57,371 bases of DNA from Perkinsus chesapeaki ATCC PRA-425 (Eukaryota > Protista > Perkinsozoa): assembly GCA_013115145.1 (NCBI GenBank), contig JAAPAO010000177.1:1-57371 (forward strand), read 5' to 3'. A program made the translations under genes and the position numbers. Shown here in pieces: positions 5,001 to 57,371 of this stretch. Under the pieces are notes generated by a model. The model was not told the origin of the DNA and did not search any database. It saw only the letters and a list, made by a program, of their open reading frames with translations. The first letter of the stretch is position 1, and each line of letters opens with the position of its first letter.

Positions 5001-6054
5001 GTCTATACGTAAAAAACGTCATACCGCAACTTGCCTTCATCGCTGCATATAAAGGCCTGTGGGACGCTTCCTTGCTCAGTGGAGTTGGAGCGGTTCTGGG
5101 TAGAGCTGCTAGGAAGGAGTGCACGATTGATTCGGTGTATCACGTATTGGTGTCACCATGCTTTGATAGGAAGCTTGAAGTGCTGCGACCTAATTATAAG
5201 ATACGGACGGGGGATACTGGTGAGGAAATGGGGGGGAAGTTGCTATGTGGCTTGGATGCTGTGTTTTGTATAAACCAACAAGAGCCTTGTTATTTATGGA
5301 GCCAGCATTATTGCGGTTTACGGTTTTTCTATCAGATTCTCCCAAGGATGTTCCGAGTATCGATCTGGTCCTTGGCACCAGCGAGATAGTTACTCTTTTG
5401 AAGGACCACGATTTGCATCTTTCTAAGTTCGTCGATGCCGAGCCGTCCAATGATCCTCTACTGTGTGGATCACATTGCTTTGTACCTTATCGAGATTCTT
5501 CAGAGTGCGGAGGATATGCCCGAGATGAGCTAAGCTCCGCGGAGAGTCCAAAATGGACCGTTGTGAAGAACCAAGATTTGACGCATGTTGGCCGAGTCGC
5601 CCGGGCGTATGGATTCAGGAACGTGCAAAATATTGTGAGGCGCGCAAGAAAGCGCGGATTCGATTACGATTTCGTGGAGATCATGGCGTGTCCCGGCGGC
5701 TGCGGGAGCGGTGGAGCCCAGGTCATTTCGGATACCATTGCGAAACGGCCGAAAGATTCTTCCGAGGTTGGTTGGTTCGCAAAAGCTACGGGAAAAATTC
5801 TCGGTAAAATACGGCGGAGCGAAACGCCCCATAAGAAAATTCGTCCGGAAGATCGAGTTGATGTGGCCAAGCTCGCCAGGGAATCTTTCACGAGAGTCCA
5901 TCACAGTGTGCCTGTCATCTCGCCGGAAAATTCGGCAGAGGCTCGAGTTCTGCGAAAACTTTTGGAAGGTCAAGATTTGAGTGCCGAATGGCGGTCCTTA
6001 TCGGAGGAGAAGAAGGATTCGACGGTTGCAACGGCATCATCATTGAAGTGGTGA
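2051..6054 (+). CDS. NAR1: Cytosolic Fe-S cluster assembly factor Nar1/NARFL/CIAO3 (Fe-only hydrogenase-like), multi-exon
   Basis: Spliced exons give MSGFSGVVKLADLDDFISPST|ECVIP..., DCLA|CSGCVTSAE, VVISVTGPSRTSLAE, LTSHCPGWTCYAEK, YHVLVSPCFDRKLE, AYGFRNVQNIV, FVEIMACPGGCGSGGAQ and a terminal ...LKW*. These are hallmark Nar1 motifs. Exon 1 2051-2113, exon 2 2266-2358; last exon ends 6054. Confidence 0.95.
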
Positions 6055-18510: not shown

Positions 18511-20265
18511 AGTGAAGCTGATGTGTAGAGTATTAAATAATATTATTATTGCATTTTCGAACGTTGGTAAACCTGTAGCACTTTTGATAGAAAAACTGTA
18601 TTGCGTTAAGCCACAGTGGGGGATATCTTAGGTAGATGCGTGCTTCAATGTATGGAGCTGCCCACTAAGAACGTACGAATTCCGGGTCGCTTGGCACGTG
18701 TTGGAGGACGAACAGAAGGGAGCGAATGGAGGGTGTATACCGTTCCCGATTTGCGAACTTGGAACCGTCCGACGAACTTCCGTAAAGTATGAAAACTGTT
18801 ATTCTGACACCTCTAGCTGCACTGTTTCAGGTTATAAGGACATCAATGGGCGTGCAGGTTAATGAGCGAGATTTTCCTCCTTTAACTTCGCCGAATGAGG
18901 CGATGATAAGCAGTGCGATAAAGAAGTAGGCCTTGTAGAGTATCTACTCGCTTTTGAGGCTTTGGATGTAATTTATGTGGAATCTTGAAAAGTGTGAAAA
19001 TGCCAAGTGCAGAAAACACGTAGCGGCTTGTCCTGGAATTTAAAGTGTTATGAAATATATGCTAGATGGATCTCCTCTTCAGATTAGAATACAGAGTTGA
19101 TGCGTTTGATGATCGGCTCGCTCTCCTCGAGAATGAGATCATCCCACCCACACAGGATAGTAGCATGCCACCAATGCCGTTTGTTAGCAGTGGTCGTGCT
19201 GGCATAATCAGCAAGGCCTCTATTCGAGGACACATTGTCAAATTCGCAAAGTCAGAATCTCCTTTACCAACACCATGATCACATTGCATAATAATAAGGT
19301 TGTTGTGTTGCAGCTTGTAGTAGCAATGCTTGAGTTATTCAGCTTGAACACACGTTGCCCGCTGCCTCAGCTGAATGCACTCTTTAATGCAAAGGGATGC
19401 GACAATCGATTCGGAAAAGCTTTCCTCAAGGATTGCCAACAGATGTAGCCGACAACAAGCGCATTATCCAACAGGTTTTGAAGGGGTCGTGGATGAAACT
19501 ATGGACCATGGCTTCGATTACTTGGTTCAACTCAAACACTACTCATTCGGCAGGATGTGTGAGCAAGCTCCAAGAGCACTAGAAATCATAAAGCTTCGCA
19601 AATAATAGACAATTAGTCAGCAAGGAAACGGTCACATACCGTGCAGCCAATCTAGTAATGTTGAAGTTCAACGACTACTGTGGTGAAGATAAAGTCTGAT
19701 AACGAACCACAGTGGTCAAAACCCCAACACTCACTTTATTAATGTAATCATACCTGCAGGTAACCCTTATCTCCAATCACATCCGTGACAGATTTACAAA
19801 TCGATCAGATGGGCGAGCGCTAGTCAGATTTCTTCGGTGTAGACGTACTGCCGTTGTCACAGTCGTTACGTCATTGCGATATAAGTATAGAGGCTCATTA
19901 TGACGTACCTCCCGCTTTGGAAGCTTTGTTGTTTATTGCCTTCTGCTGATCGTATAATTTGAGCTTGTTTTAAACCACATTCGGAATAGTTCAAGATGGA
20001 GACGGTCAGTGGGGTTGGTGCTTCACGTTTGTGTCGAGTTGTCTTCGGCAATAGAATGCATCGTTTGGTGCGTATTATGTTTGGTTGATGAATAGCCTTA
20101 CTTTGTATATGAAGGTCTATGTGTAAAGGGGTTTGGAAAGCATTCTCAGGAGGAATCTTAGGTTGAAGGGCGTAAGATACAGAATAGGTCAATAGATATT
20201 CTCTTGTAGTGTCTTTGCTTTCTGCTGCTACATTCTTTTATCCTGCCTTCGCTACTCTCACGGGA

Positions 20266-20584
20266 ATGTCGGTTATCATCCGTATCGTATTCCTAACCCT
20301 TCTGATGGTGACCTCTATCTTTGCTGCTAAGGACGTTCCCAATGAGTTGGAGGAACTTGTCTCCTCTCTAAGAGCTAGGCAGGCGTCCAAGTACACTTCC
20401 AGACGTAACGGAAGCGCTGACGTTGTCAACAAGGGCGGTCGCTCTAGTGGTGCCAGCAAGAGCCAGGGCAATGTCAAGGATGGTAAGCCTTCTTCCCTTT
20501 TGTCTTCAACCTTCACGCTGTTGTTTAGGCCTATCGGAGATCCTAAGTGTATTGGACAGAGTGGTTGCAGGTCGCAGTGATTAA
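20266..20584 (+). CDS. Small secreted protein A (90 aa) of tandem array
   Basis: Exons 20266-20482 and 20529-20584, 46-nt phase-1 intron. Product MSVIIRIVFLTLLMVTSIFA-AKDVPNELEELVSSLRARQASKYTSRR...KD|GLSEILSVLDRVVAGRSD*. Confidence 0.85.
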
Positions 20585-21798
20585 CTAAAGCCTGTGTTGT
20601 TATTATTACTATTGGCTACGTGGCTATTATTCAAGGAGCATATGGAAGTTATCTTCTACTAACTTTTTGACTACTAATATCAACTATTGCTACCATCTGT
20701 TCTTATTATTCTGATACACGTTATTACTACCCCCAAATACCCCAGTGGTGATTGTCAAAGTCGCCGTGTCAGTGTTGAAGGCATTCTTCTCGATGTGTTG
20801 TTTGATATTTTTAACCATAAGGATGGTTTGAAATAGCGATTCATCATCGACAGTGGTTCACAAAAGAGAGTATTGTATAAGCTTTAATTCATTTGTCTAG
20901 GTTGTGAAGGCGGAGACGTTTATTGAGCTCATAGTAGTTCTGCGGTGATTGTGAGGATTTCTGGTACGTCTTTGTTAATACTGTCATTAGCAACGTCGTC
21001 GTCGACCTCCCCCTGTAATGTGTAAATCTCTTACTACTACTCCTACCACTAATACTACCGTTGCTGCTGCTGGTGTACTCGTCTTGTCTGCTGATCTTTG
21101 GCTTATTCTCCATTCTATTGCTGAGGGTCCAGAGTACTACTACATCATTCCAACTACTACAGTGTATGCTGATCATGATCATCATTATTATTATGACTTT
21201 TTTACCACTCCTTTAATAAAGTGCGATTTCCTAATGTGAAATTACAAAGAAAGCACTGAAGTAGCGGCCGTTCCAGTATCCACAAGTCTTCGACTTGGTC
21301 CCCATATAGTCACCATTGCTGCCGCCACCGCCGTGATCACGAAGGTTTGTTGTTCTTCTCGTAGTTGCTTTTATGGTTTGTTAGTATCCCTTTGTAGATG
21401 AAGAGTTCAAATGCTAACTCGAAGTAGGAAGTAGAAAACATGGTTTGTTAGTCTATGGCCATATGGCGACAGTATCAGGAAGAATATCTAACTTCACTTT
21501 GGGAATATAATCACAACATTGTTGTGTTTGGGTATTGGTGTTGTTTTTTATTATGCGTATTATTAACTTTCGTTTCGTTTTCCCGCATGGTCGTCTTGGG
21601 GTTGGCTGGAAATTAAGTGCTCTCCAAGAGTCCTAGAGTACCTCTTTTGGTGACTTAGGTTTAATTGGCAGATTCCAGGCTGAGCTAGATACCTTACGTT
21701 GACTGATAGAGTTAGATCCAAAATGGCTAAAATTAGACGTAATTTGTATCATGCACGCTTCAACTCAGGATATTTGCTCTCCATAATTGTCTTCTCTT

Positions 21799-22354
21799 AT
21801 GGCTTCTTTTGCTGTATTCCTTCGACGGCTGTCTCTACCTGTGATGTTCTTCGTTATGATGCTCACATCTGGTCAAGCCGTGTTGGATAGAAACACCGCA
21901 GCAGAGTCTCTAGGTTGTAACGAAAGTGTCGGTATCGAGCCGGTCACCACTACCACAAGCATCCCAGCGACCGCTGCAGTTAGAACCACCAGCGCCTCGC
22001 CTACGTCATATAATTTCTTATATTCAACTTCATCATCGCCGTATCGTGTAGCTGCTGAAGAATCGACAAGAACTTCTCAATGGAGTGATGAGTCTGCTTC
22101 TGTTGGAGTTGCCTCGGTGAGCATGCCGGAAGAGATTGAGGAGTTGGTGAATTCACTGCAAGCTAGGCAGGCAATGAAGTATTCCTCTTCGAGGCGTATT
22201 AGGGGAGACACTAGACCTGGACAAGAATCTACAGGTAACTATGCCGCTGAGGAGTACCGTATGTGTCTACGGTTATTGTTGTTCAGATATTTTTGACATT
22301 CTCAAGGTCATTGAGGCCCGTGAAGGTGTAGAAGGCCTCGGTGTGAAGAACTAA
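21799..22354 (+). CDS. Small secreted protein B with Ser/Thr-rich insertion, tandem array
   Basis: Exons 21799-22234 and 22287-22354, 52-nt phase-1 intron. Signal peptide, S/T-rich spacer, then PEEIEELVNSLQARQAMKYSSSRRIRGD...ST|DIFDILKVIEAREGVEGLGVKN*. Clearly homologous to A. Confidence 0.85.
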
Positions 22355-22379
22355 GATGAATCATGTGTGTTAAGAACGA

Positions 22380-23660
22380 GGGAAGTGCCTCTCGCGATAA
22401 ATCGCGACACAGTTTTTACCTCTCGCTCTTGGCAACCCCCTCAAGAACAACATTAACCTTTCTGTTACTCTCGTCGCCTTGGCAAGCGTCACTATCATTG
22501 TAGCCTTTGTGATGCAGCGGGTTTTCATTTTTTCTATCAGAAGTTTCAGTGCATAGCATTCCTGTATGGTTCCTTTTTGTCCATCTTCATTGTTGCACAA
22601 TTTGCTTCGTAGCAAGTTCAATCGAATTAGTAGAAAAAGATATCTGTACCAAATAAGTATAACCTTGTAATCTCTATCATTGGTCGTATACCGGAACTAG
22701 CTCACCAGTCGTGTCACCAGCGGAGGCGCAGGTTGTCTACTCGCACCAGCGCTCCTGTTCCTGACCGACAACGTGTGCTACATTTTGTTTTCGATGACCC
22801 TTATTGTAATCAGTTTTAATATCCACGGTTCAGTGGGTTAATAGTGCAGCATCATTGTTAATCACCTGATTGCTGATAGCTCTAACCCGTTCTAGTTTGC
22901 GATATGCTTCTTGAATAGGTTACGGTATTGAATGCGAACCTGCTACTAAAGGCCTTTGTAATGTTGGCGTTTGCTTGACGGCGAAGCTTCCGTTTAATTT
23001 CTGATAATCGTCGATCGCTGCTTCTAACTGTTTCTGCCTGCGTGTCGCCACCGTCGCCGCTATCATCATCAGTACGATTACTCTGTTGTTCTTGTTCTCA
23101 CGATAGATGTCTGTGCTTTGTAATGCGTACTGTGGTTGTTATCTTCCGCAGCTGTGATCGCCTTGCGCCCTGCCATTAGTGGGTTTCTCACTGATGGAGC
23201 GTCACGTTTTTAAGGCCCACATCGGTGAAACGACCTGATGACACGCTTTTGTTGCTGACTGAAAAAACTCTGTCGGCGACTGTGCTAAGATCAGCTTGCC
23301 ATCCTTACTTGTGAGGACCAGTTGCTGATGTTACTGCTTGATTGTTATTGCTGCACATACCATAGCTATAAGATCGTCGTCGTCGTAGTAGTAGTTTATT
23401 GCGTGCTGAGGTTTACGAGAAACTTGCTCGTCAACTACAGCAGCAGAAGAAATCTAGCGCTCAACTGTGATACGGTTCTCATGTTCTGTCTCACATAAGA
23501 GGATGTTATCATCCTTTCTGCGTATCAGTCTGCTGTCCTGATGAGTTTTATCTGTCCCTTGGCACTTGTTGACATCGTAGCCTCTACAATGGAAGCCCCT
23601 TGTGATGGGCTTTCCAGTGAGACCACGAGAATAACATACCTGTCGTTGTCGATGTGATCG
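22380..23660 (-). pseudogene. Degenerate coding-like relic (stop-interrupted, partly coiled-coil-like) between array genes B and C
   Basis: Minus-strand frames such as QLEAAIDDYQKLNG...IQEAYRKLERVRAISNQVINNDAALL are broken by stops. Family not recognised. Confidence 0.25.
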
Positions 23661-23984
23661 TGACCACCCATTTCATTCGTGGTTTCATTCATCACTATTT
23701 ACAGCATATTGTTGTGTTTCTTCTACCCTGCACGGCGCTCAATTTTCCCAGCCACGGTTTCCGTGGGTTTTCTTAAGGATTACTCCCTTATTAATATGTA
23801 TCTTTGTATCTTTGTATGTTTTTAAGATTTATCCCCACTTTGAATTGTTATTAGCGTATCTTGTACGAATGTGCGGCGTAGAATAGAGCCTCTACGTCAG
23901 CATGGCTTCTACGACACAGCTCAATTGTATATTAATTTATGTGCTCTATGTAGCTGATTTGGTCTCCTTCAATTCCCTATCTCG

Positions 23985-24224
23985 ATGAACATGTTCTTCC
24001 TGCTCGCGCTTCTCTTCTCAACAACCCAATCCATGATTTCCGCTGGTCCTGCCGGTGTCCTTGAGGTATACGAGAGCATGATGACTAACGTTGCGATGAG
24101 GAGAGACCTCAAGTTTGCCAAAGAAGCTGACAGTAAGGAGCGCAAAGGAAGGTTTGGGAAGTTGATTTCTTCAGATTATAGAAGAGTCCTTCGTGCCCTT
24201 GAAGTTCGTCCGAGTTGGCGCTGA
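23985..24224 (+). CDS. Small secreted protein C of tandem array
   Basis: Product MNMFFLLALLFSTTQSMISA-GPAGVLEVYESMMTNVAMRRDLKFAKEAD|NYRRVLRALEVRPSWR*. Putative 42-nt phase-1 intron 24133-24174 (GTAAGG...TTCAG), in frame and stop-free. Confidence 0.8.
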   Translation: MNMFFLLALLFSTTQSMISAGPAGVLEVYESMMTNVAMRRDLKFAKEADSKERKGRFGKLISSDYRRVLRALEVRPSWR

Positions 24225-24669
24225 TTATATTACGAACTCGGACGTCGGTGGATGATAGCATTCAAAAGCTATGCTGTTTCCGTTTGACTACTAATTTGTT
24301 ATTCGTAAAAACTATTAGAGACCTACTTGTAGTGATGACGACTGTTTCCTATAATATTGGTACAGATAAGAAGACATCGTTCGGAAGTGTTCCATCAGTC
24401 ACAGTCTTTTTGTAGTTTATTTCCTGTTCGTAAAGATCAGCTCAACTTTATATTAAAACGGTCGTCCAAGAGTCATATTAGTTGCTTTGTGCTTCTACCG
24501 TTTGTGGTTTGATGGTTGGAGAGCAAACATGCGCTCCAGCCCAGTGCTTATTGAGTATTGTAGGATCATCTCATTGATTGAGTTGAGTTGAGTAGTTCAC
24601 GATACGTCTTGTAAGTTCTGCGCTTTTGTCCCTCGACTTCTGGCTTGAACCGTCGTTATAGTCGGTATA

Positions 24670-24971
24670 ATGGCCTGCTTCCGTCGACTATTCCTCATCG
24701 TGGTTGTTGCTCTTTCTTCGACCGTAGCATCTGCTACTCCCTACAGAGGCAATCCTAGGTCGAATGGTTCTCCCACTATGAAGGGAGCTTCGGCAGCGGC
24801 CGCGCTTGATGTCGATAAGCTTATTTCATCTCTTGTTATTGAAAAAGCTTCCGTGAAGGGGGAGAGAAAATCTCCGAGTAAGCTAACTTTACATCTGGCT
24901 TGTATTTTTTCCTCTTAGGCTTGGATGAGGTGTTGAAGGCCATCGAGATCGGCAGTGGTGTTCGACGCTAA
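24670..24971 (+). CDS. Small secreted protein D of tandem array
   Basis: Exons 24670-24877 and 24919-24971, 41-nt phase-1 intron. Product MACFRRLFLIVVVALSSTVASA-TPY...LDVDKLISSLVIEKASVKGERKSP|SLDEVLKAIEIGSGVRR*. Confidence 0.85.
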
Positions 24972-26080
24972 GCGTTTACTGAGAACAAGGCGGCTACGAA
25001 ATTGCTATACTTCGTTGATCCTGCCATGCTCCTTCCTAGCTAATACCATTCTGTTTATGTTGGTCTTTTTATCCTGAACTGTGCCGCTTGTTTTCTCTTG
25101 TAATGAGTTGATGTGTTTGTTGTTTCCGACAGCTACAGTTTTGGACGAGTTTAACGCTTGGTGCTGTAGTAGGTATTAGTAGTAGCATGCATACACTGCT
25201 GGTGTACTATATGTCGCTGATCCTTAGAGCCCGCTATTTCCATGAGGCTGAGCCCATGTTTGCGGGTTATTTCTTATAGTAGACCTCTAGTAGTGCACCG
25301 AGGGGCAACGCTCTTCTCGCTTCTTGCGGGACCTCCGTTTCCCTCTATAATTTTATCGATTCATTTCTATTGCAATAATCTGGTCTGCTGTACAATCGCT
25401 ATTGTCCGAGAAATTTTCTAGTGGAGGATACCTGGTTGATACACCTCTCATTACTATACACTGGAAATGTCGAATGATGGAGACGATGACATCCTAGACG
25501 ATCTCTAGAAGACATTTCTATAGACATTCGCAGCCTTGTTGTGTTGAGTCAATTAACAATTGAAGACCTTTCTTCTGGAAACTCTTGCCCTACTGAAGGG
25601 GTTACAAAATCCTTGATGTCGATGTGTAGTGCTTCGCAAGAATACATCAACTCATTTTTGCATGTAAAAAGCAGTTCTAGAATCGATTCTGAATTTCATA
25701 ATCGGTTTATTGAACGACCCCGCTATTACTGTCAAGAGAAAGCGGTATCCTTTTGAAACCCGAAGGTACATCGAGATGACAATTTTTGTGTTCTGCGTAA
25801 CTTCTCTGAAGCACTCGAAACTGACCTGAACTTTAAACCGCGGTATTCTGGCCTGAAATGATCCAAGAAGGATTATTAACCTTATCACGTCCCCCTCTGC
25901 TCTTCTTCCGCAAGCGGTTTCGTCGTCTTGAACTTGAAACGCTTTCTATGGATTATTTAACTGCCGCTTGTCGCGATGAAGCGGTTTGGTAGTGTAGTGG
26001 TGTCACAATTTCCTTCAACCTGAATAGGCTCGGAAAGCTGCCAGCACCATAACCATTTGGTAGCGTTACTTTTCTTCCCC

Positions 26081-26361
26081 ATGCACCTTCTTTGGCTCAC
26101 GCTAAGCATCCTCTCCGTTCTTATTGCGCTCATCCCGGAGGCTAGAGCAGCAGCTGCAACCGTCTTCTCTGTTGAGCAAGTGTACGGTCAGATGATGTCC
26201 GATTTGGCTGCTAGAAGAAATGAGCAGCTTGCAGTTAGAAGAGTGGAGAAGATCGCTCGTGGTGTCGCCGGTTAGAGAAGTTCGCTCGATTATTTGAATA
26301 TTTTGTTTTGTTAGGTCTCGCTGCTGCCATCGGGGCGCAAGTCGGCCAAGAATGGAGGTGA
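26081..26361 (+). CDS. Small secreted protein E of tandem array
   Basis: Exons 26081-26270 and 26315-26361, 44-nt phase-1 intron. Product MHLLWLTLSILSVLIALIPEARA-AAATVFSVEQVYGQMMSDLAARRNEQLAVRRVEKIARGVA|GLAAAIGAQVGQEWR*. Homologous to C. Confidence 0.8.
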
Positions 26362-27451
26362 TCGTTGAATACTGCATTTCTGGGAAGTATGACCTTTTGA
26401 CGTTGGTGCGTACCAGCACCCATAGTAGGCGAAGATGTGACTAAGCTGTATATACCGATTATTACATTTATTTTCACTTATTATTATTACGTTCGAGGTC
26501 GCTGAGCCGCCTCTGAATGCCGATTATTTTATGATTGATCGCTGCCGGTATCGGCGTATCGTAAGGCACATGTCTTTTTGGTAATGGAAGTTTGTGCGTG
26601 GAGTACACTGTTGTGTTGGTAGTAAAACATGTCTTCCGGCGTATTTCACATTCGAGGTGGGGACATTTCTATCTTATCTGAGAGGCTCCAGTGACCGAGA
26701 TTCGGTCGCATGCAGGCAGAAGTAGTGTGGTTCGTAATTAAGTACTTGAATCAGTCCCTTCCTCTGTGACCACTTGGCTAAGACACTCGAGTCATGTTAC
26801 ACTTCTCGTGGTTTGCTGAGTCCCATAATCTATTGATAAGTCCTTTTGAAAAGCAAAGCACCCTAGCCTAGTCACGAGGGCCTAACTACGGCTCTAATTC
26901 TCGTGCTAATGAACGACGGCCAAAGCTGAGTTCGGGTAAAGCCCGCAGAGACATGATGTGCTAGAGATGCAACGACTGAAGAGGTCCGTCACGCTTTAGC
27001 AATATTCCGTATGCGAAGGGAGCTTCGTTTTAGCATACTCTATCCACGTGTTACAGGTTTATTCGCTTAATCTGTACATCATGTTTCATCGACACCCCCC
27101 ATGCCAAAGAGACATGCCTGTAGACGTTCCCGCTTGATTCGTTGAGTTTCGTGAACAAAATACTTCGAAATGCGATCTAGTTCATTCCAGTCGCACTAAG
27201 AGTAAATGCACGTGTACCATTTACTCGGAGCAAGCCGTTATCAATACTGTGATATAGAACCTATGTAGTGCAAAGATATCTCTGTAGTGCGCACGCCAAG
27301 ATACCCCATCGTTTCGAAACGGCCAGAGTTCATTCGAGGGTGTCATTTAAGTAGCTCACATTTTCATTTCACGACTCCGAGGAGTTCTCACGTAAATTCT
27401 TACAACCTACGCTGGCAGGCTCGCGTTTTGCGCTTCTTCGCTTTCCCTAAC

Positions 27452-27735
27452 ATGCCCTCTCTTCGTTCTGCAATCCGCACCTCAATGGTTACTGCCTTGC
27501 TTGGCAGTTGGACAGCGCCGGCGACCGCTGCTAATCGTGCTGCCGATCTCGAATCTCAGGTGAAATCGATGAGAACTCAGAAGAACAGCAAAAAGGCAAC
27601 CAAACCGAGTAAGTCCCTTCTCTTCTCGCATCGTATCAGTACTATTCACGGTTTGTAGGCCAATCTGAAGTCCTCGCCATGATTCGCGATGCTTCGAAGT
27701 CGAGCCACAATGATCATGCTACAAGATACACTTAA
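27452..27735 (+). CDS. Small secreted protein F of tandem array
   Basis: Exons 27452-27608 and 27659-27735, 50-nt phase-1 intron. Product MPSLRSAIRTSMVTALLGSWTAPATA-ANRAADLESQVKSMRTQKNSKKATKP|SQSEVLAMIRDASKSSHNDHATRYT*. Confidence 0.75.
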
Positions 27736-28670
27736 CTGACAGCTCTTGTCTATGAGCGTCAACGCAATTAATCACGAGTGTCGGGGTTACTACTTGCTGT
27801 TATTACTGCGCTGCCGTACAGGCTCGTTTTTAGGCAGCATGTGGTTAGACTCTGTGGCTTCGTTTGCTGGAGCCTCTTCTTAGTGGTGGATTGTGTGATT
27901 CTGTGACGTAACATCAATCCTTTCATTTTCCAAATACGGCTGATGTAAATTCTGATAGCCTTTCATGAGTGATGTGATAGATTTTTTATTTTAACATCTG
28001 CCCGAGCATTCGGAGTCCCATTGCTGGATGACTGTTTGCTCTGTGGTAGTGACTTGTGTATTTACTCCTGCTAATCTCGCTACTCTACGATGCTTTTTTA
28101 TTGCTGTTGTTCGTCGCCCAGTCGATTCCTGCTGACTTTCGTTGCTAGCATATAACGTTAGAATTGATGAAGTCGTACTGAGAGTCCTCAATGGTGCTCT
28201 CGTACGCATGTAGCTGCTGAAGGTTAATCAGACTGCTGACACTAGATACCAATTATGACGATGATGATGATGAGAGTTGTAACACACGCAGTTTCAGTGA
28301 TGGAGTAACTGTGATGGTGGGTTCATATTAGCATGTTGAGTTGGTAAATTGATTCTATCATTGCGTCGGTTTAAGCACTACTGGTCATGATTGCAGCAGT
28401 ACTATGCCTGGTAACGGTACTATCATTATGATAGTATCATAAGCTATCTCAATCTATTGTAATGCCGATCTTAGCTCGAGTTATGTTGGTATATATAAAC
28501 TGAGCCGTCGGTTGATCAAGTCTCGGAACCCAATGTACTTTCACTTGCTCTGTATACCATACAGTGTATAGCAACTTATTGACTCGAACGTAGAACTCTT
28601 CGTGGTAACAACACGCATAACATCCAGACTTATAAACCATGGACATCTTTATCTATTAAAGTAGACAGAG

Positions 28671-29434
28671 TCAGTACTGTTTCCCAATTTCCTGAGCGAT
28701 TTTCAGTAGCTCTTCTTTATTATTTTCGATCATCTCGCCAATCCAACGGCTACTTTCCTTATTTTGGAGTTCACTAGCACGTTCAATGATACGCGTGGCT
28801 ATATGACATGTCATGTCCTTATTCCTATAATAGGAGAAAGGTTCTTCAAAGGCAGAAAAGGGGCTTAATTTGTTCAGCTTCTCCATAGTCCTTGCCTTTG
28901 CATTCTTGATTACATAACCTTTGTCACCCACCTTAATCGAGAATTTAAAGGGTTTGTCGCACCTGAAATTGATATGCGTGTATTCACTGCAGATCTCACT
29001 AGTGGAGTGCTCCAACATTCTTACTGGGAAAAACTCACGAACTCTCCACCCCAGGGGTTATTCCAGTAGAGGGATGTGCCACCTTCCTTAGTTCTACTCA
29101 GATAAATTGTTTCATACGACGATTTGATTCTACATTCACCTGGCTCCTCTGTTTTCTAAATATCGCATAAATAGGAAGCGAAAGTAATACACGAAAGACT
29201 ACCGTGACAGTGAAGTCTTCCAACCGTGTGACTGCACTCTTCACAGAACCAAGAAGCTTCTCGATCGCATCGAGTCGGGATCCGACCACATCAGAGTCCT
29301 GAGGAGTGAGACATTCAGTGCGTAGCGACACTCTTAGCTACATGCTCAATGGGCGGACCGCGAGCCGCCTTTATGGCTAGGATTGGGATTAAATTCAACA
29401 GTACTGATAAAACTCGGCGAGGAGAGGCTATCAT
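28671..29434 (-). CDS. Hypothetical secreted protein (~200 aa) with N-terminal short coiled coil, multi-exon, convergent on the array
   Basis: MIASPRRVLSVLLNLIPILAIKAARGPPIEH|DSDVVGSRLDAIEKLLGSVKSAVTRLEDFTVT|KTEEPGECRIKSSYETIYL...CDKPFKFSIKVGDKGY...EIGKQY*. The first two introns are in phase; the third junction is uncertain. Confidence 0.6.
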
Positions 29435-30525: not shown

Positions 30526-31452
30526 TTACCAGCGTATTTTACCACCTAGGCCGTACTTGTCGATGAGGCTCTGATAGAGTGGCTCAAGTTGATCTACATT
30601 GGGAAGGTCATCTCCTTTTGAGTAGAGGTCAAACTTGTTGAACTCGTTCACAACTCTGAGCTTTGCATCATCCTCGGGGGCCATCAAATGCTGATACGCT
30701 CCTTTGTCATGCCATGGGTAAAAGCTATGATAACGGATACACCATAGGCCTTCGATGGGAAGCGAACATGTGGTGTGATTATTTAACACTTGATAGAGGT
30801 ACTCATCATGCCCAAATGCCATCAAAACATTATCAAGTCCGCAGTGAGGCTGATACATGCCGTATGGGGTAGAATAGACTGGATGCTTAAAGTCGGGATT
30901 CCCCTCGAACTGATGGGCCAATACGATATCTTTGCTGAACTCGCAACCAACTGGAAATGTATCACCAACAACACACCATTGTTCCTCGCCCCAACATGAC
31001 ATCACCTTACCAAGGTCATGCAGGAAGCCAGTCAACCACAGCCAATCCTTGTCCGGGTGAAGCTTCCTGATGGCCTCGGCCGTCATAAAAGCGTGTAGGG
31101 AGTTTGGAATGTCGACATCTGGATCACTCTCGTCCACGAAATCATCTAGTTTGTGGAGAATCTCCATTATAGTGTATTCACCATGATTGAATTCGAGCCA
31201 CTTTTTGTGCAGGTCTCGAACTCTTTCAACGGTCATATTTTCGTGCTGCCTTTTATAGTTTGCCTCAACAATACTTTGCCTGGAGGAGTTCTCATAATTC
31301 CTATAAGTCTCCCCCAAAATGTTTGTTGGGCGGAAATTATTCGCCAACGCCTCTTCCGAATAGTGTTTGCTCTCTATGGGCGGCTCGAGTGCGGCGGCGG
31401 CTGCCACCACTGCCACGGGTCCGTCACCAATACACACCGGTGCTACTGACAT
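30526..31452 (-). CDS. MIOX: Myo-inositol oxygenase, intronless, 308 aa
   Basis: Single ORF with YRNY, VDESDPD, HAFMTAE, HDLGKV, QWCVVGDTFPVGC, GHDEYLY, IRYHSFYPWH and KFDLYSK. These are the MIOX di-iron and substrate motifs. Confidence 0.97.
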   Translation of the reverse strand: MSVAPVCIGDGPVAVVAAAAALEPPIESKHYSEEALANNFRPTNILGETYRNYENSSRQSIVEANYKRQHENMTVERVRDLHKKWLEFNHGEYTIMEILHKLDDFVDESDPDVDIPNSLHAFMTAEAIRKLHPDKDWLWLTGFLHDLGKVMSCWGEEQWCVVGDTFPVGCEFSKDIVLAHQFEGNPDFKHPVYSTPYGMYQPHCGLDNVLMAFGHDEYLYQVLNNHTTCSLPIEGLWCIRYHSFYPWHDKGAYQHLMAPEDDAKLRVVNEFNKFDLYSKGDDLPNVDQLEPLYQSLIDKYGLGGKIRW

Positions 31453-51000: not shown

Positions 51001-54000
51001 TGTCGAGTTAAACGGCCATCTCTCTGTCTCTTTCAAAAAAATACTGCTTGTAAGTTTCGATCGACGTCAGGTCTTTTGTACCGTCATGGTACTACCGTGT
51101 GCCCTAAGCGAAGATCTTGAATTGTTTCATTAGAATTGCAATTTTTTATCATCGTCGCCACTGCCAGGGTGGCCACTGGCTATTTTCTACTCTACTTCAG
51201 GTACATTCATCTTAATCCGTCGTACCCGTGGCTAACCGAAGAAGAGAAGGAAAAGTGGCAAAAGCAAACGCCTTGAAGCTTCATCGACGCCCTCGATGTA
51301 GGTGCCGCGAAAGTTTCACACTGAAAACACCCACACAACTGAGGCGCGAGGAAGCCCTAAGAGAACAAGCGGAGGTGGAGCTGAGGCTCATACAGGAGAA
51401 GTAACCATCTTCGGACTCACAGTGATCATCTCCGGCTGCTACGGCCGAGAAAAGGAGGGTGACGGTTTTAACTGCAGGAGGTTGGAGCAAGAGGCCTCGC
51501 GAGCGAAAACTCGAGAAAGTGCCACAGCTGGCCGTGATCTGCTCCGCAAGCTCGAACTGGAGATCGAACGACGGTACGCAGAGGCACCATATTTGGATGC
51601 GGAAAGCTACATGTTCATCAGATTCGGGCTCCGGAAGAGCGAGTTCGGGTTGAGCGATGTGCTACGGAATGTATCAACTGAGCGTATGCTAGCTTTCAGC
51701 CAAGTCTGCGACCCCAAGAGTGGTACGACGACTGCTTACTGGCTTTTGGCATTGCTCTTGTGGAACTTAGATGGACTTGACTTCGGACTTGACACTGCGG
51801 AGGTTGACGAGAATTTTCTGGAATCTTTTGTGTGGCCCTTGAAGACGAATACTGGATTCGTAATGCTCCCATCTCGATCCATTCGGCCAGCGTTCCCTAT
51901 GAAGGCTCGGCGAGAGATAGAAGGGCCGGTTGAAGATGAACTATTGGGGGAGGAACTGCCGTATGACACGATAGTGCTGTTTAAGGGCAACAAGTGGGGC
52001 AGCTTTGATACTTTGGGATATCTCAATTAGGTTAGACGAAGGGGGTGGAGTTGAGCTATGGATGGTAGGTACAAGCTTAGAGTCAAACCAATGAAGAAAA
52101 AGAGACATAAGAAGGGGAAAGAACATGGAGGAAGACGAGGCAGCCATGACCGAACAGCAGCGGAAGGGAGAGGAGGAGGAGAGGACTCTGGCCTTCAGCA
52201 GACATACTTGTAGGCTATTCACAGTACCGCAGCGAAGCCTGGAGTACAATGCACCGTTAGTCAGTAAAGCCATTAAGTGACGGTCACTCATCCATATAAA
52301 GCAGATTACGTCTGCTGCATATTGGCCGTAAGCATCAATGTTGCGATATTGTGATGCCCTGTGATATTTTCTGGCAGCTGTTTTGATATATTTGCCTTTG
52401 TATCCCGAGTTGGAAAAGGAGGGCTTCTACTACCCCTATCATTTCCTCTCATTTCCAAATACTGTAAAATTACTATCCGTTGGCTAAGTTCCTGGCTTTT
52501 TCGGTATTTTACTGCGACTCTTTTCATTGAAGTATTCTTACTCATTTCGGTAGCGTGTGTACAACTGATCTCAAATCCCCCGCCATACAGCGACGCTGCT
52601 GCTCCAGCCGGCACTATCCCTTCCCTCACGGTCAGGCCGTTATTAAAGCAAGAGTACCTTGCCAGCCACACTCTTGTGTGTAAAGTCTACATCCTCGCCG
52701 CTAGTGGCATCATACCACCTGGAGGAAGCGCGGAGTGTGAGAGCTATCTTTGGGTGAGAGTAAGGCTGATACGAGATACCCACCAAACCCATATGCGATA
52801 CAAACTTAACAAAAGAACAACAATCAGTCACACTACGCATTGGACACCGCCACGAGCTCTCCAAAATGCCCTTCAGGTTTACAACTCTAAAGAGGATACC
52901 GCCGGTGGGCTGAACTCGATCAAAGATTCCAGCAACTCCCGATTGGGCACCTTGAACCCAGAGTTTAACAAGTGCTACTCGTTACCATGCCGATTTCCAG
53001 AGAACACCGCGCTTACTATCAAGTTGATGGAGAGACACTCTATACTGGGCGATGCGACCATCGGGGCAGCGGTCATCGATATTGAGAATCGCTGGTTCCA
53101 TCCAAAGTAGGCGTTGAAATCAATGGTGTCGAACGTTGAGGGGTAGATACAGACAGATGATGAATCTGGAGGGTGAGGACGGCAGCAATGTTAAACGGTT
53201 CTCAGATGTCCCTGTCGAAACTGTAAGAAATAATTTGACTACACCTTTTCAATATTCACTTCGTCCTTGGGAACATCAATTTCGTGGCGGCGAGCGAAGT
53301 TGAAGGTCCGAATCCGAAATAGAAAGATCATGTTCACGCTTGGGGCATTAAATTTCGTCTTTGAACTTTCAATTTCGTTCGGACCCAGGAGGTGCCTTCA
53401 ATTTCCCTCACTTAAGAAAATCAATTTCAACCTAGTCTACGAGGTGATAAAGTTCGAGTTAAACTATGAACGACTCAACGTCGACTGTGTGACTTCTATT
53501 TCGGATTCGGACCTCCAACTTCGCTCGCCGCCACGAAATTGATGTTCCCAAGGACGAAGTAGATATTGAAAAGGTGAAGTCGATCGAATACTGAGTAAAG
53601 TTACCAACGCTGAGTCAGCCTCAGCTTCGGTCAGCGTGGTTGTCCCTTGTGCATTGAATACCATGTACCTGTTTGAGACGTTATCATCGAACCCTCCAGG
53701 CCTAGCGGAGCTAAGTTAGCGTACCGATTCTAGGATCTCCACGTACCCGCAGTATACCCGCACTACTAGATGTATACATGAAGCCTCTTCGGGCGTACAT
53801 GAGAGATAATCTCAGGTGCCGCTTCTGATAGACGGCAGCTTCATTCCCACGGGGAGGTTGAAGATGTGGATTGAGATACTAGATGAATCTGAGGTTACTA
53901 AACAATACACCCCAAGGTCCAGCTATGCCTATGTCAGGCGATGGGCCGCCCGGAGCCTGTGCTACCGTCGGCCAACAAGGAGGTTATACAAGCACGGCTT

Positions 54001-55104: not shown

Positions 55105-55300
55105 GCATGTTTCATGTTTATCGTCTCACAGAGGGCATTGACATTGCGTTGTCCAAAATGAGGGTTCTTTATTGAATACTTAAGATGTTTCTAAGGAGCG
55201 GGGTCCACTGCGTGAATTTGGTTAAAGCGGCTTCAACCATTGGAGCTTATCGGTCTATCAGCGGCTCTACAGAACTAGGCTCCAGTTAATATATGTGTGC

Positions 55301-57371
55301 ATGTCAGATGCTTCTAAGGTCCACCCGGTAATACAGCGTCTGCAAGGCAGGTGGTTCGGTCTGCCTTCGGGTGCTGAGATTATAGCTCATGGGGCTAAGG
55401 TCACGTTTAACGGTGTGCCTCTGCTGGGAAGGCTCACTCGCCATTCTGACGGCAAAGTGACTCTGCTCCAGTGGGTCTCCTACCCCGATAAGGAGGATAA
55501 ACCAGATGAGCTTACCTGGTTCGTCAACACTCGCAACGGACCCGTGATGAGCACTCAGTGGGTTCGCTCGTTACCAGAGCCAAAGAGCGCGCCGAGCAGC
55601 CCGAGCAAAGCTAGAAGGAAGTCCTCGAGTTCACTGCTCACCCTCCCGCCACCTGTAGGAATAACGAAGAGCGTCTCGAACACCAATGCTTTGACGGACA
55701 CTAGAAGATACTGCAGTGGTGTCACAGCGCGATTGACAGCATGCTCGCCCTCATCTCGGTGGACCTTGTGCGCGGTGGACGAGCTCGGACGTGACATGAT
55801 CTGGTTAAAGGAATTTATCGAGCGGATCCTCATCGCAGTTGGAGCTGCTATTGCTGTGGAGCAGCTAGGTCACCCCTGGCTTTCCCGCAATGATTCGGAG
55901 TTCGTTCTTTGGCATGCCTCTACCACTGTGCAGCGAGTGGGAGCGACGGGTGTTGGCGTAGACGATCATGTCAGTGGGCCGCAGGTTTCGGGTGCAATAC
56001 GAAGGCAAATCGATGGTCAAGTAGAGAGCGCTGGAATACTGCTTTGTTGGAAGGACGATGACTTCTCTTGTAGAAGACTGCGAGTCAGAGTCGAGAGGAG
56101 CGGTGGAAAAATGTCTTTTGTTGTGCACGATTATGAATTGTCATCGAGGACCTTGGATGCCTGGCAAAAAGGAGAGGCCAAGTTGGGTAACGGCTTTACC
56201 CTAAGGGTGATAACACCGACCCAGGAGACCGCTGAGGCTGTCCATGGCGCGATCCAAAGAAACTCTTTCCACCTTGGACGTTACCTTTCTGGTCTGGTGG
56301 AAGACTGCCGAACGGTAGAGCGAACTCGATGGCTGCTACTACGGTGGCATCAAGATCATATTCAAGGCGATGGTGTGCACTTTGGGCTGTTCGACCGCAA
56401 CGATACGTTCCTCGGTGTAGTTGAGATCGACAGACGTCCATTGCGAGACGAGATCGTCGGTGTTGTTGAGTACTGGTTGACCAGAGATGCATGTGGGCAA
56501 GGGCTGGCCCAAAGGATGTTCCAAGAAGCTATGAGATACGCTGTGCAAATGCTCGGTATCACATCGTTCCACTTGGACATCCACCCGGACAACAAAGGCT
56601 CTGCTGCAACTGCGATACGGTGCGGAGCGAAGCAGGCGAAGTCACGAAGAGAGCCGAGAGGGCAAGGCGGACGATATGCGATGGCAAGCACACAGATGTT
56701 TGATGTTTACAAGATAAACGCGGAGAACACAGGGGTGGCCTGTGGGGGCATTGGCGGGAATCGAGGCGCATGGATGGAGTTATGGATAGAAACCAAAGTG
56801 GCGAAAGCAAAGGAAGCTCTGAAGGATTTGAAGAACTCATCTTTGCACTTGGCAGGAGCTTTGACCAAGGTAAGTATACCCCCCCCCACCACAGCACAAT
56901 CAACACTTAATTGTTCGAACGCGTCATTTGCTACATATTTGACCATCACGTAATTGCTATTGGAAGCTCAGACATGAAAAATATCGCGCAGTATTGAATC
57001 GTTGTATTTGGCTGATTTATTGGCGAGAGCAGTTGTATTGCTTCCATGCTCTTTTGCATTTTCAGAGCGAAGAAGTGTTCCGCAACTTTGGCCTCAACGC
57101 CCGCGATCCGAGGCTCAGTTCCGCGAAGGATTTCATGACTCAACAACGTCTCATTATTGAAGCTCAAAATGAGCTCCACAACGTGAGCCATTTCGCCGTG
57201 TGCTCTCTGACCGATATAGCTTTTAGTTGAGAAAGCGAATCTCCAAGGACCAGGAGAGTATCGACCAACTGGAGACCAGAGGGCAGAGATTGACCGATCA
57301 GTTGAGGGGTGTGAGGGAGCGAATGCAAGAGCTGAAGAAAGGGAGTGATAATCACGGTGAAGACCATATTA
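55301..57371 (+). CDS. RimJ/RimL-type GNAT acetyltransferase domain protein with unknown N-terminal region and C-terminal coiled coil; continues beyond window
   Basis: Long exon 55301-56869 contains AIQRNSFHLGRYL...HFGLFDRNDTFLGVVEI...VEYWLTRDACGQGLAQRM...LDIHPDNKGSAATAIRCG (Acetyltransf_3 motifs). Phase-0 exons 57066-57182 and 57227 onward encode a coiled coil. Confidence 0.85.

Follow-up and report, generated by a model that had tools for sequence, protein, structure and literature searches.

Analysis of the window, i.e., the whole 57,371-nucleotide contig JAAPAO010000177.1 of Perkinsus chesapeaki ATCC PRA-425, revealed an array of six short two-exon genes (A to F), all on the + strand and spanning positions 20266-27735. 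The array represents a real, undescribed and Perkinsus-restricted family of small proteins that are predicted to be secreted, and it falls within the wide group of small secreted proteins encoded in clusters. In the reading that we favour with moderate confidence, the family derives from seven ancestral paralogues and encodes very small, cysteine-free, alpha-helical secretory proteins that would act intact. An earlier reading of the sequence letters (hereafter the original prediction) had placed this DNA in a parasitic alveolate, in agreement with its provenance from P. chesapeaki.

Gene models, splicing and spliced leaders

Gene models were built from reading positions 20000-28000 (Table 1). 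The distance between adjacent genes is 0.45-1.6 kb, and each gene contains a single GT..AG intron of 41-52 nucleotides (nt) in phase 1, directly followed by a short terminal exon (15-25 codons). The deduced products of A, B, C, D, E and F consist of 90, 167, 65, 86, 78 and 77 amino acids (aa), respectively. All models of the original prediction, namely six + strand genes with phase-1 introns of this length and a short second exon, were rebuilt, and its six helix-1 strings were recovered verbatim (6/6).

Four public RNA runs were aligned to positions 21780-27740, gene A and the A-B interval lying outside this range, and assembled RNA contigs were inspected. The RNA contigs skip exactly the predicted introns of B (52 nt, two runs), C, D (four runs) and F, and transcript contigs L005 and L007 (Joint Genome Institute) lack the introns of A and D, respectively, which confirms the introns proposed for these genes. 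The A splice is also the one used in proteins P0001 and P0002, and in gene C the reading frame stays open if the intron is retained. In the four runs over the aligned range no RNA contig crosses the E junction, the region of this gene being represented by an RNA contig over 26350-26525. The E splice is supported by an immediate stop upon intron read-through, by the agreement of public models in two species (P0003 and P0004), and by the conservation of exon 2 in three species behind introns of variable length (44 nt, 72 nt in P. marinus and 99 nt in P. olseni).

Genes A, C, D and F give rise to trans-spliced mRNAs, in which the leader junction lies 31-56 nt upstream of the first ATG. For gene A, transcript contig L005 starts with the leader tail GGCTCAAG and continues with the window from 20210 to ~21291, and loose contig ends were detected before 23952 in gene C (...GCCATCTGGCTCA, matching the 21-nt Perkinsus leader), before 24613 in gene D (leader tail CCATTTTGGCTC) and before 27417 in gene F (leader tail CCGTAGCCATTTTGGCTCA). 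All these tails abut a genomic AG and correspond to described leaders, the 21-nt Perkinsus leader ACCGTAGCCATCTGGCTCAAG and the canonical dinoflagellate leader (PMC3101222). The X3 libraries were made by reverse-transcription PCR, and their leader letters, which have the canonical dinoflagellate form, may derive from the primer. No leader tails of B and E were seen in the RNA examined, and no spliced-leader gene was found in the window. Since the 5' untranslated regions (UTRs) of 31-56 nt contain no upstream ATG, the predicted start codons are the first available.

The 3' UTR of gene A, ~700 nt in length (20585-21291), is very long compared with its tiny coding part. RNA coverage continues for ~1.2 kb downstream of B (22355-23589), and that of gene C stops near 24544, ~70 nt upstream of the D leader acceptor. 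The + strand is pyrimidine-rich over 20-26 kb, with an AT skew of -0.17 to -0.20. Co-transcription of neighbouring array genes is possible. Two non-canonical 'joints' in the 3' UTR of B (AT..GT and TA..TC, at 22860-22897 and 22920-22991), seen in one run, look like indel differences between two alleles rather than introns. Sequences identical to the contig also occur in leader-primed 454 libraries labelled marine metagenome (X3, X6-X8) and in runs X4 and X5, labelled organisms B and C of study P1, which suggests either library carry-over or presence of the parasite in the samples.

Table 1. Features of the six-gene array (positions in the window)
Gene	Feature	Position	Strand	Remarks
A	5' UTR	20210..20265	+	Spliced-leader acceptor AG at 20208-20209
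A	Exon 1	20266..20482	+	Signal-peptide-like leader, helix 1 (ELEELVSSL...), long basic linker
A	Intron	20483..20528	+	46 nt, phase 1, GTAAGC..TTTAG; missing from L005
A	Exon 2	20529..20584	+	Short helix, Gly-Arg at end
B	Exon 1	21799..22234	+	Leader, ~80-aa Ser/Thr/Pro-rich spacer, helix 1 (EIEELVNSL...)
B	Intron	22235..22286	+	52 nt, phase 1; RNA joint (cut +3) in runs X1 and X2
B	Exon 2	22287..22354	+	RNA joint and gene model
C	5' UTR and exon 1	23954..24132	+	Acceptor AG at 23952-23953; ATG at 23985
C	Exon 1, coding part	23985-24132	+
C	Intron	24133..24174	+	42 nt, phase 1; RNA joint in X2
C	Exon 2	24175..24224	+	Kept in P. olseni orthologue
D	5' UTR and exon 1	24616..24877	+	Acceptor AG at 24614-24615; ATG at 24670
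D	Intron	24878..24918	+	41 nt, phase 1; RNA joint in 4/4 runs; missing from L007
D	Exon 2	24919..24971	+	RNA joint and gene model
E	Exon 1	26081..26270	+	Leader and long helix; annotated as P0003
E	Intron	26271..26314	+	44 nt, phase 1, donor GTTAGA; inferred
E	Exon 2	26315..26361	+	Ala/Gly-rich helix continuation, QEWR at end
F	5' UTR and exon 1	27419..27608	+	Acceptor AG at 27417-27418; ATG at 27452
F	Intron	27609..27658	+	50 nt, phase 1; RNA joint in X3
F	Exon 2	27659..27735	+	RNA joint and gene model

Synteny, constraint and family relationships

The array is syntenic and identically ordered in P. marinus and P. olseni, both of which harbour a seventh member, G. The P. marinus locus (L002) contains A, a G-like member, B, exon 1 of C, an assembly gap, exon 2 of D, E and F. 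The P. olseni array lies on two contig ends, the first (L004) with a Myb-like gene, A, G, B, C and D, and the second (L001) with E, F, genes for myo-inositol oxygenase (MIOX) and RING. The flanks are common to the window and to both these species, with the Myb-like gene upstream and MIOX/RING downstream. In P. olseni, G is located between A and B (L004:6554-7038), is of the C/E type and has a phase-1 intron of 260 nt; its P. marinus counterpart (L002:8140-8400) occupies the same place and is more divergent. A search between A and B of the P. chesapeaki window found no trace of a G-like member, and this species has apparently lost G, keeping six of the seven ancestral paralogues.

The intron position, ahead of the last short segment, is shared by 17/17 models of the three species, with intron lengths of 40-372 nt. 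It is in phase 1 in the 15 intact models, and in two frame-broken P. olseni copies it was computed as phase 2. In the P. olseni assembly (GCA_013115135.1), the A copy (L004:5279-5600) has frame breaks between the leader and helix 1, and exons 1 and 2 of the F copy (L001:1346-1630) are out of register; an intact P. olseni A is represented by P0011, and the breaks may be assembly errors or reflect a broken allele.

Between species, the proportion of synonymous differences is near saturation (pS 0.6-0.8), with nonsynonymous values (pN) of 0.16-0.35. Helix 1 is the most conserved region (aa identity 0.77, pN/pS 0.18), followed in order of increasing pN/pS by exon 2 (0.63 and 0.30), the leader (0.54 and 0.46), the linker (0.59 and 0.48) and the pre-helix spacer (0.39 and 0.65). 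Judged from these ratios, purifying selection acts on both helix 1 and the exon-2 segment. Comparison among species gave 76-80% identity for the mature part of E and 82% for the adjacent MIOX. Two versions of the array are represented in the transcriptomes (L005, L006 and L007). The first is identical to the window, and the second shows 76-92% DNA identity to it; L007 is chimeric between the two, and the second version was also detected at 24613-24877 in run X2. All amino acid changes of the divergent allele fall outside helix 1 and exon 2, the exon 2 of A being unchanged (P0002). This divergent copy probably represents the other haplotype of a genome that is polyploid or heterozygous; the published draft genome was reportedly polyploid.

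Pairwise BLAST and leave-group-out profiles separated the members into two subfamilies, A, B, D and F versus C, E and G. Scores within subfamilies were reached by 0 of 200-500 shuffles. Between subfamilies, the score of the C profile against the P. marinus A protein (A_Pm) was reached by 0/500 shuffles, and that of the A/B profile against the P. olseni C protein (C_Po) by 0/200. Given the shared gene plan, a common origin of A-G is the economical explanation, and the array appears to be one paralogous family in which the link between subgroups is weak but real. The two subtypes alternate perfectly along the seven-member array A-G-B-C-D-E-F. This order is one of 35 that are possible and is what duplication of a two-gene cassette would produce. 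The six genes share no DNA repeats beyond chance 18-19-mers, indicating that the duplications are old. The above-shuffle scores in the subgroups and the same intron in three species thus uphold the originally proposed old paralogous family with conserved intron phase and position.

Searches of Pfam with eight members (E up to 10) returned no family, the two sub-threshold matches (DUF1574 and UNC45-central) being due to chance, and a helix-1 profile run over the six frames of the window revealed no further member. Comparison of a 54-position profile with 1.84 billion representative proteins gave ten matches at E <= 0.001, eight of which are Perkinsus array members; the other two, P0008 and P0013, are long repeat proteins matched via many repeated stretches and were judged spurious. 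These two aside, the same search found neither relatives outside Perkinsus nor paralogues elsewhere than in the array, consistent with the initial impression that the genes belong to no known family. Foldseek comparison of the E model with Swiss-Prot models gave no match, and a language-model feature search with E, which was discarded, produced bacterial hypothetical proteins at <= 0.61 and meaningless single-helix structural neighbours. In the literature, we found no paper naming the array genes or PMAR012039, nor any study offering usable secretome or proteome data for Perkinsus.

Predicted proteins and their mode of action

In A-E, the N-terminus has a strongly hydrophobic core (Kyte-Doolittle 9-mer 2.5-3.7) with small-x-small sites behind it, and the leaders keep their hydrophobicity between species while their sequence drifts. 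No cysteine was found in the mature parts scanned (B and D from just before helix 1), and the spacer of B contains one Cys in P. chesapeaki. This spacer of ~80 residues retains its Ser/Thr/Pro-rich composition between species, but not its sequence, and may be mucin-like, a type usual outside the cell. AlphaFold2 modelled E as one continuous helix (residues 8-54, predicted local distance difference test [pLDDT] 88.8) that crosses the supposed linker, and the D-type mature chain as two helices interrupted at the Pro-containing linker. The net charge of the mature parts ranges from -6 to +8 (+1 to +3 in E).

Each array gene is expressed as its own mRNA, to which the spliced leader is added (in A, C, D and F) and from which the short phase-1 intron is removed (in A, B, C, D and F according to the RNA). 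In the intact-protein reading, the product would enter the endoplasmic reticulum via its N-terminal hydrophobic segment, a predicted cleaved signal peptide, and the mature protein of 45-70 residues, or ~140 in B with its mucin-like spacer, would act without further processing, shaped as one long helix or as helix-break-helix. Its putative site of action is outside the cell, in a secretory compartment or in the wall. Helix-helix association would be the most likely mode of action, possibly as type-1/type-2 pairs, as suggested by the alternation of subtypes. One-to-one orthology and the strength of constraint suggest a core function in Perkinsus rather than a host-specific arms race.

Several observations weigh against this reading. 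The signal-peptide-like N-termini of the original prediction are strongly hydrophobic in A-E, but the leader of F is weakly so (Kyte-Doolittle 9-mer 1.4). The D-type model is of low confidence (pLDDT 64, predicted template modelling score 0.23), and amphipathicity exceeds that of shuffles for E only. By sequence alone the inter-subfamily link is weak, such scores being reached by ~0-8% of shuffles and several pairs being no better than shuffles. The proposed type-1/type-2 pairing is derived from gene order alone, the trees of the two subfamilies are not obviously congruent, and the apparent loss of G leaves A without a subtype-2 neighbour in P. chesapeaki.

The main rival, which we consider rather unlikely, is that the products are prepropeptides: after removal of the signal peptide, subtilisin/kexin-like enzymes would cut at basic pairs and release the conserved helices as individual secreted peptides, which might serve, for instance, as parasite-parasite signals, host-peptide mimics or membrane-active peptides. 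Such a scheme would suit the layout of leader, variable middle and conserved C-terminal segment, and at least one K/R pair indeed lies between the conserved segments in every member of every species, with its position kept among the orthologues of A, B, D and E. However, the dibasic pair of the linker, although present throughout as originally described, is predicted by composition alone, since a K/R pair also occurs in 59-89% of composition-preserving shuffles per protein (joint probability 0.17). Moreover, the exon-2 segment of A, B and D has no basic pair immediately in front of it, constraint is strongest in helix 1, right behind the leader, and not in the C-terminal segment, and the E model is an unbroken helix through both Arg-Arg pairs. 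Protein A ends with Gly-Arg(-Arg) in all three species (Gly-Arg-Arg in two), which resembles an amidation/cleavage signal, but the Gly-basic ending is limited to A. Of the diversified secreted peptide system originally envisaged, the signal-peptide-like leaders and the unknown old family stand, whereas peptide processing is unsupported by the dibasic pairs, the distribution of constraint and the E helix.

The comparison with known peptide-hormone precursors leads to a similar picture. Like the animal pigment-dispersing hormone (PF06324) and plant CLE, RGF and IDA precursors, the array proteins are 65-170 aa long and consist of a leader, a less conserved middle with basic residues and a conserved C-terminus; A shares the Gly-Arg-Arg ending in two species, and these precursors are the nearest in language-model feature space. 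In particular, the feature search placed A_Pm beside ten animal peptide-hormone precursor families, the best being pigment-dispersing hormone (0.92, with 146 shared features), and the P. olseni B protein (B_Po) beside plant peptide precursors (0.67). Nonetheless, the A_Pm scores (0.86-0.92, 110-146 shared features) are below the level of kinship, the families disagree with each other, and the scores lie in a range that shuffled proteins attain, that for A being reached 4-10% of the time. None of the eight members matched a Pfam hormone family (E up to 10), and the array further differs from these precursors in its unenriched basic pairs, its most conserved N-terminal helix and the single helix of E. 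Judged by the calibration of the search itself, the hormone-precursor neighbours are thus leads compatible with chance, which reflect architecture and not kinship, and the resemblance of the A exon-2 segment to pigment-dispersing-hormone-type peptides is a loose likeness.

That the products are effectors which the parasite secretes into mollusc tissue or haemocytes in order to manipulate the host appears distinctly unlikely. The parasitic nature of the organism, the secretion leaders, the genus-restricted family, the mucin-like spacer in B and the gene clustering, as in many effector families, are all compatible with this role. Against it, expression of the genes is seen in the RNA runs and transcript assemblies analysed, which we take to be from axenic cultures, although their records do not say so. 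Three species with different hosts retain one-to-one, syntenic orthologues, purifying selection acts throughout, E being as conserved as the metabolic enzyme MIOX, copy number is unexpanded with no paralogues found elsewhere, and no PEXEL-like host-targeting motif is present. Proteins of Apicomplexa exported by PEXEL/TEXEL resemble the array products in small size, origin from an alveolate parasite and a leader followed by a basic stretch, but a regular-expression search for RxLx[EQD] found no match in 16 mature sequences, RRL occurring only in P. olseni G. Synteny, purifying selection, constant copy number and absence of a host-targeting motif thus disfavour a fast-evolving host-effector role.

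It is improbable, in our estimation, that the array constitutes a peptide-signalling system of Perkinsus itself, in which two alternating precursor types would be cleaved, A being amidated at Gly-Arg-Arg, into short helical peptides acting between parasites or mimicking mollusc neuropeptides. An uncleaved N-terminal hydrophobic segment, anchoring a short helix in the endomembrane or plasma membrane, is very improbable: the hydrophobic cores of 15-16 residues in A and E, the very small mature parts and the weak structural matches of full-length models to single-pass membrane proteins would allow such a signal anchor, but in every member the core is followed by small-x-small sites, in C and D it spans only ~9 residues, and the leader evolves at the rate of the linker, as cleaved signal peptides do. 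Finally, two unrelated interleaved small-gene families (A, B, D, F and G, C, E) with a coincidentally shared intron phase, to which the low cross-subfamily profile scores (0-8 bits, D/F versus C/E being no better than shuffles) might point, are extremely improbable in view of the strand, two-exon plan, phase-1 intron before the last short helix, size and leader common to both, the cross-scores beating all shuffles and the perfect alternation described above.

Among known systems, the array most resembles in general plan the lineage-specific small secreted protein clusters of parasites and pathogens, which likewise consist of short head-to-tail genes with leaders, limited to one lineage and poorly annotated. 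Unlike such clusters, its mature parts are Cys-free, its subtypes alternate and each gene receives a spliced leader (seen in A, C, D and F); rapid turnover is usual in these clusters, whereas the array is strictly one-to-one and under purifying selection across three species. It also differs from small cysteine-rich secreted effectors and ciliate pheromones, as the mature parts scanned have no cysteine framework. Strong conservation, absence of cysteine and two alternating subtypes are the unusual features of the array. Cecropins (PF00272) have a leader, a basic amphipathic helix followed by a more hydrophobic, Ala/Gly/Val-rich helix, and an intron inside the part of the gene encoding the mature peptide, all of which recur in E. 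The array proteins differ from them in the absence of a Pfam match, in charge (-6 to +8; +1 to +3 in E) and in a conserved acidic N-terminal part, so the cecropin likeness of E may be taken as an analogy only.

Annotation, neighbouring genes and significance

In the public P. chesapeaki record, A (with a truncated start), B and E are annotated, and C, D and F have no gene call. The unannotated genes C (23985-24224), D (24670-24971) and F (27452-27735) are those best supported by RNA. The annotated A (P0001) starts from an internal Met at 20305, and the signal-peptide-like leader (20266-20304) is thereby lost. Gene B is recorded as a 167-aa protein with orthologues P0007 and P0009; the P. marinus model P0007 (L002:10001-10540) is truncated, starting at the Met before helix 1 and comprising 55 aa. 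P. marinus E has no gene call, and the Logan-derived open reading frame (ORF) P0006 reads through its intron. The P. olseni model P0010 (L004:10001-11075) is a fusion of C exon 1 with gene D.

Elsewhere, the window contains a single-exon MIOX gene (30526-31452, - strand), a GNAT acetyltransferase ORF (55295-56953, + strand), an iron-hydrogenase-like (Nar1-type) fragment (5245-6054, + strand) and a C2-domain fragment (52361-53110, + strand). A search of Rfam over 19000-29000 gave no match.

Overall, the analysis provides exact gene models for a conserved, expressed, genus-specific family that is predicted to be secreted, and corrects the annotation by adding three P. chesapeaki genes and by identifying one truncated start, one truncated P. 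marinus model and one P. olseni fusion. P. marinus can be transfected and edited (PMC8062965), which, together with the shortness of the genes, makes localisation and deletion practical. If the products were processed signalling peptides, this would be unusual for an alveolate; otherwise, the array would represent an ordinary orphan secreted family.

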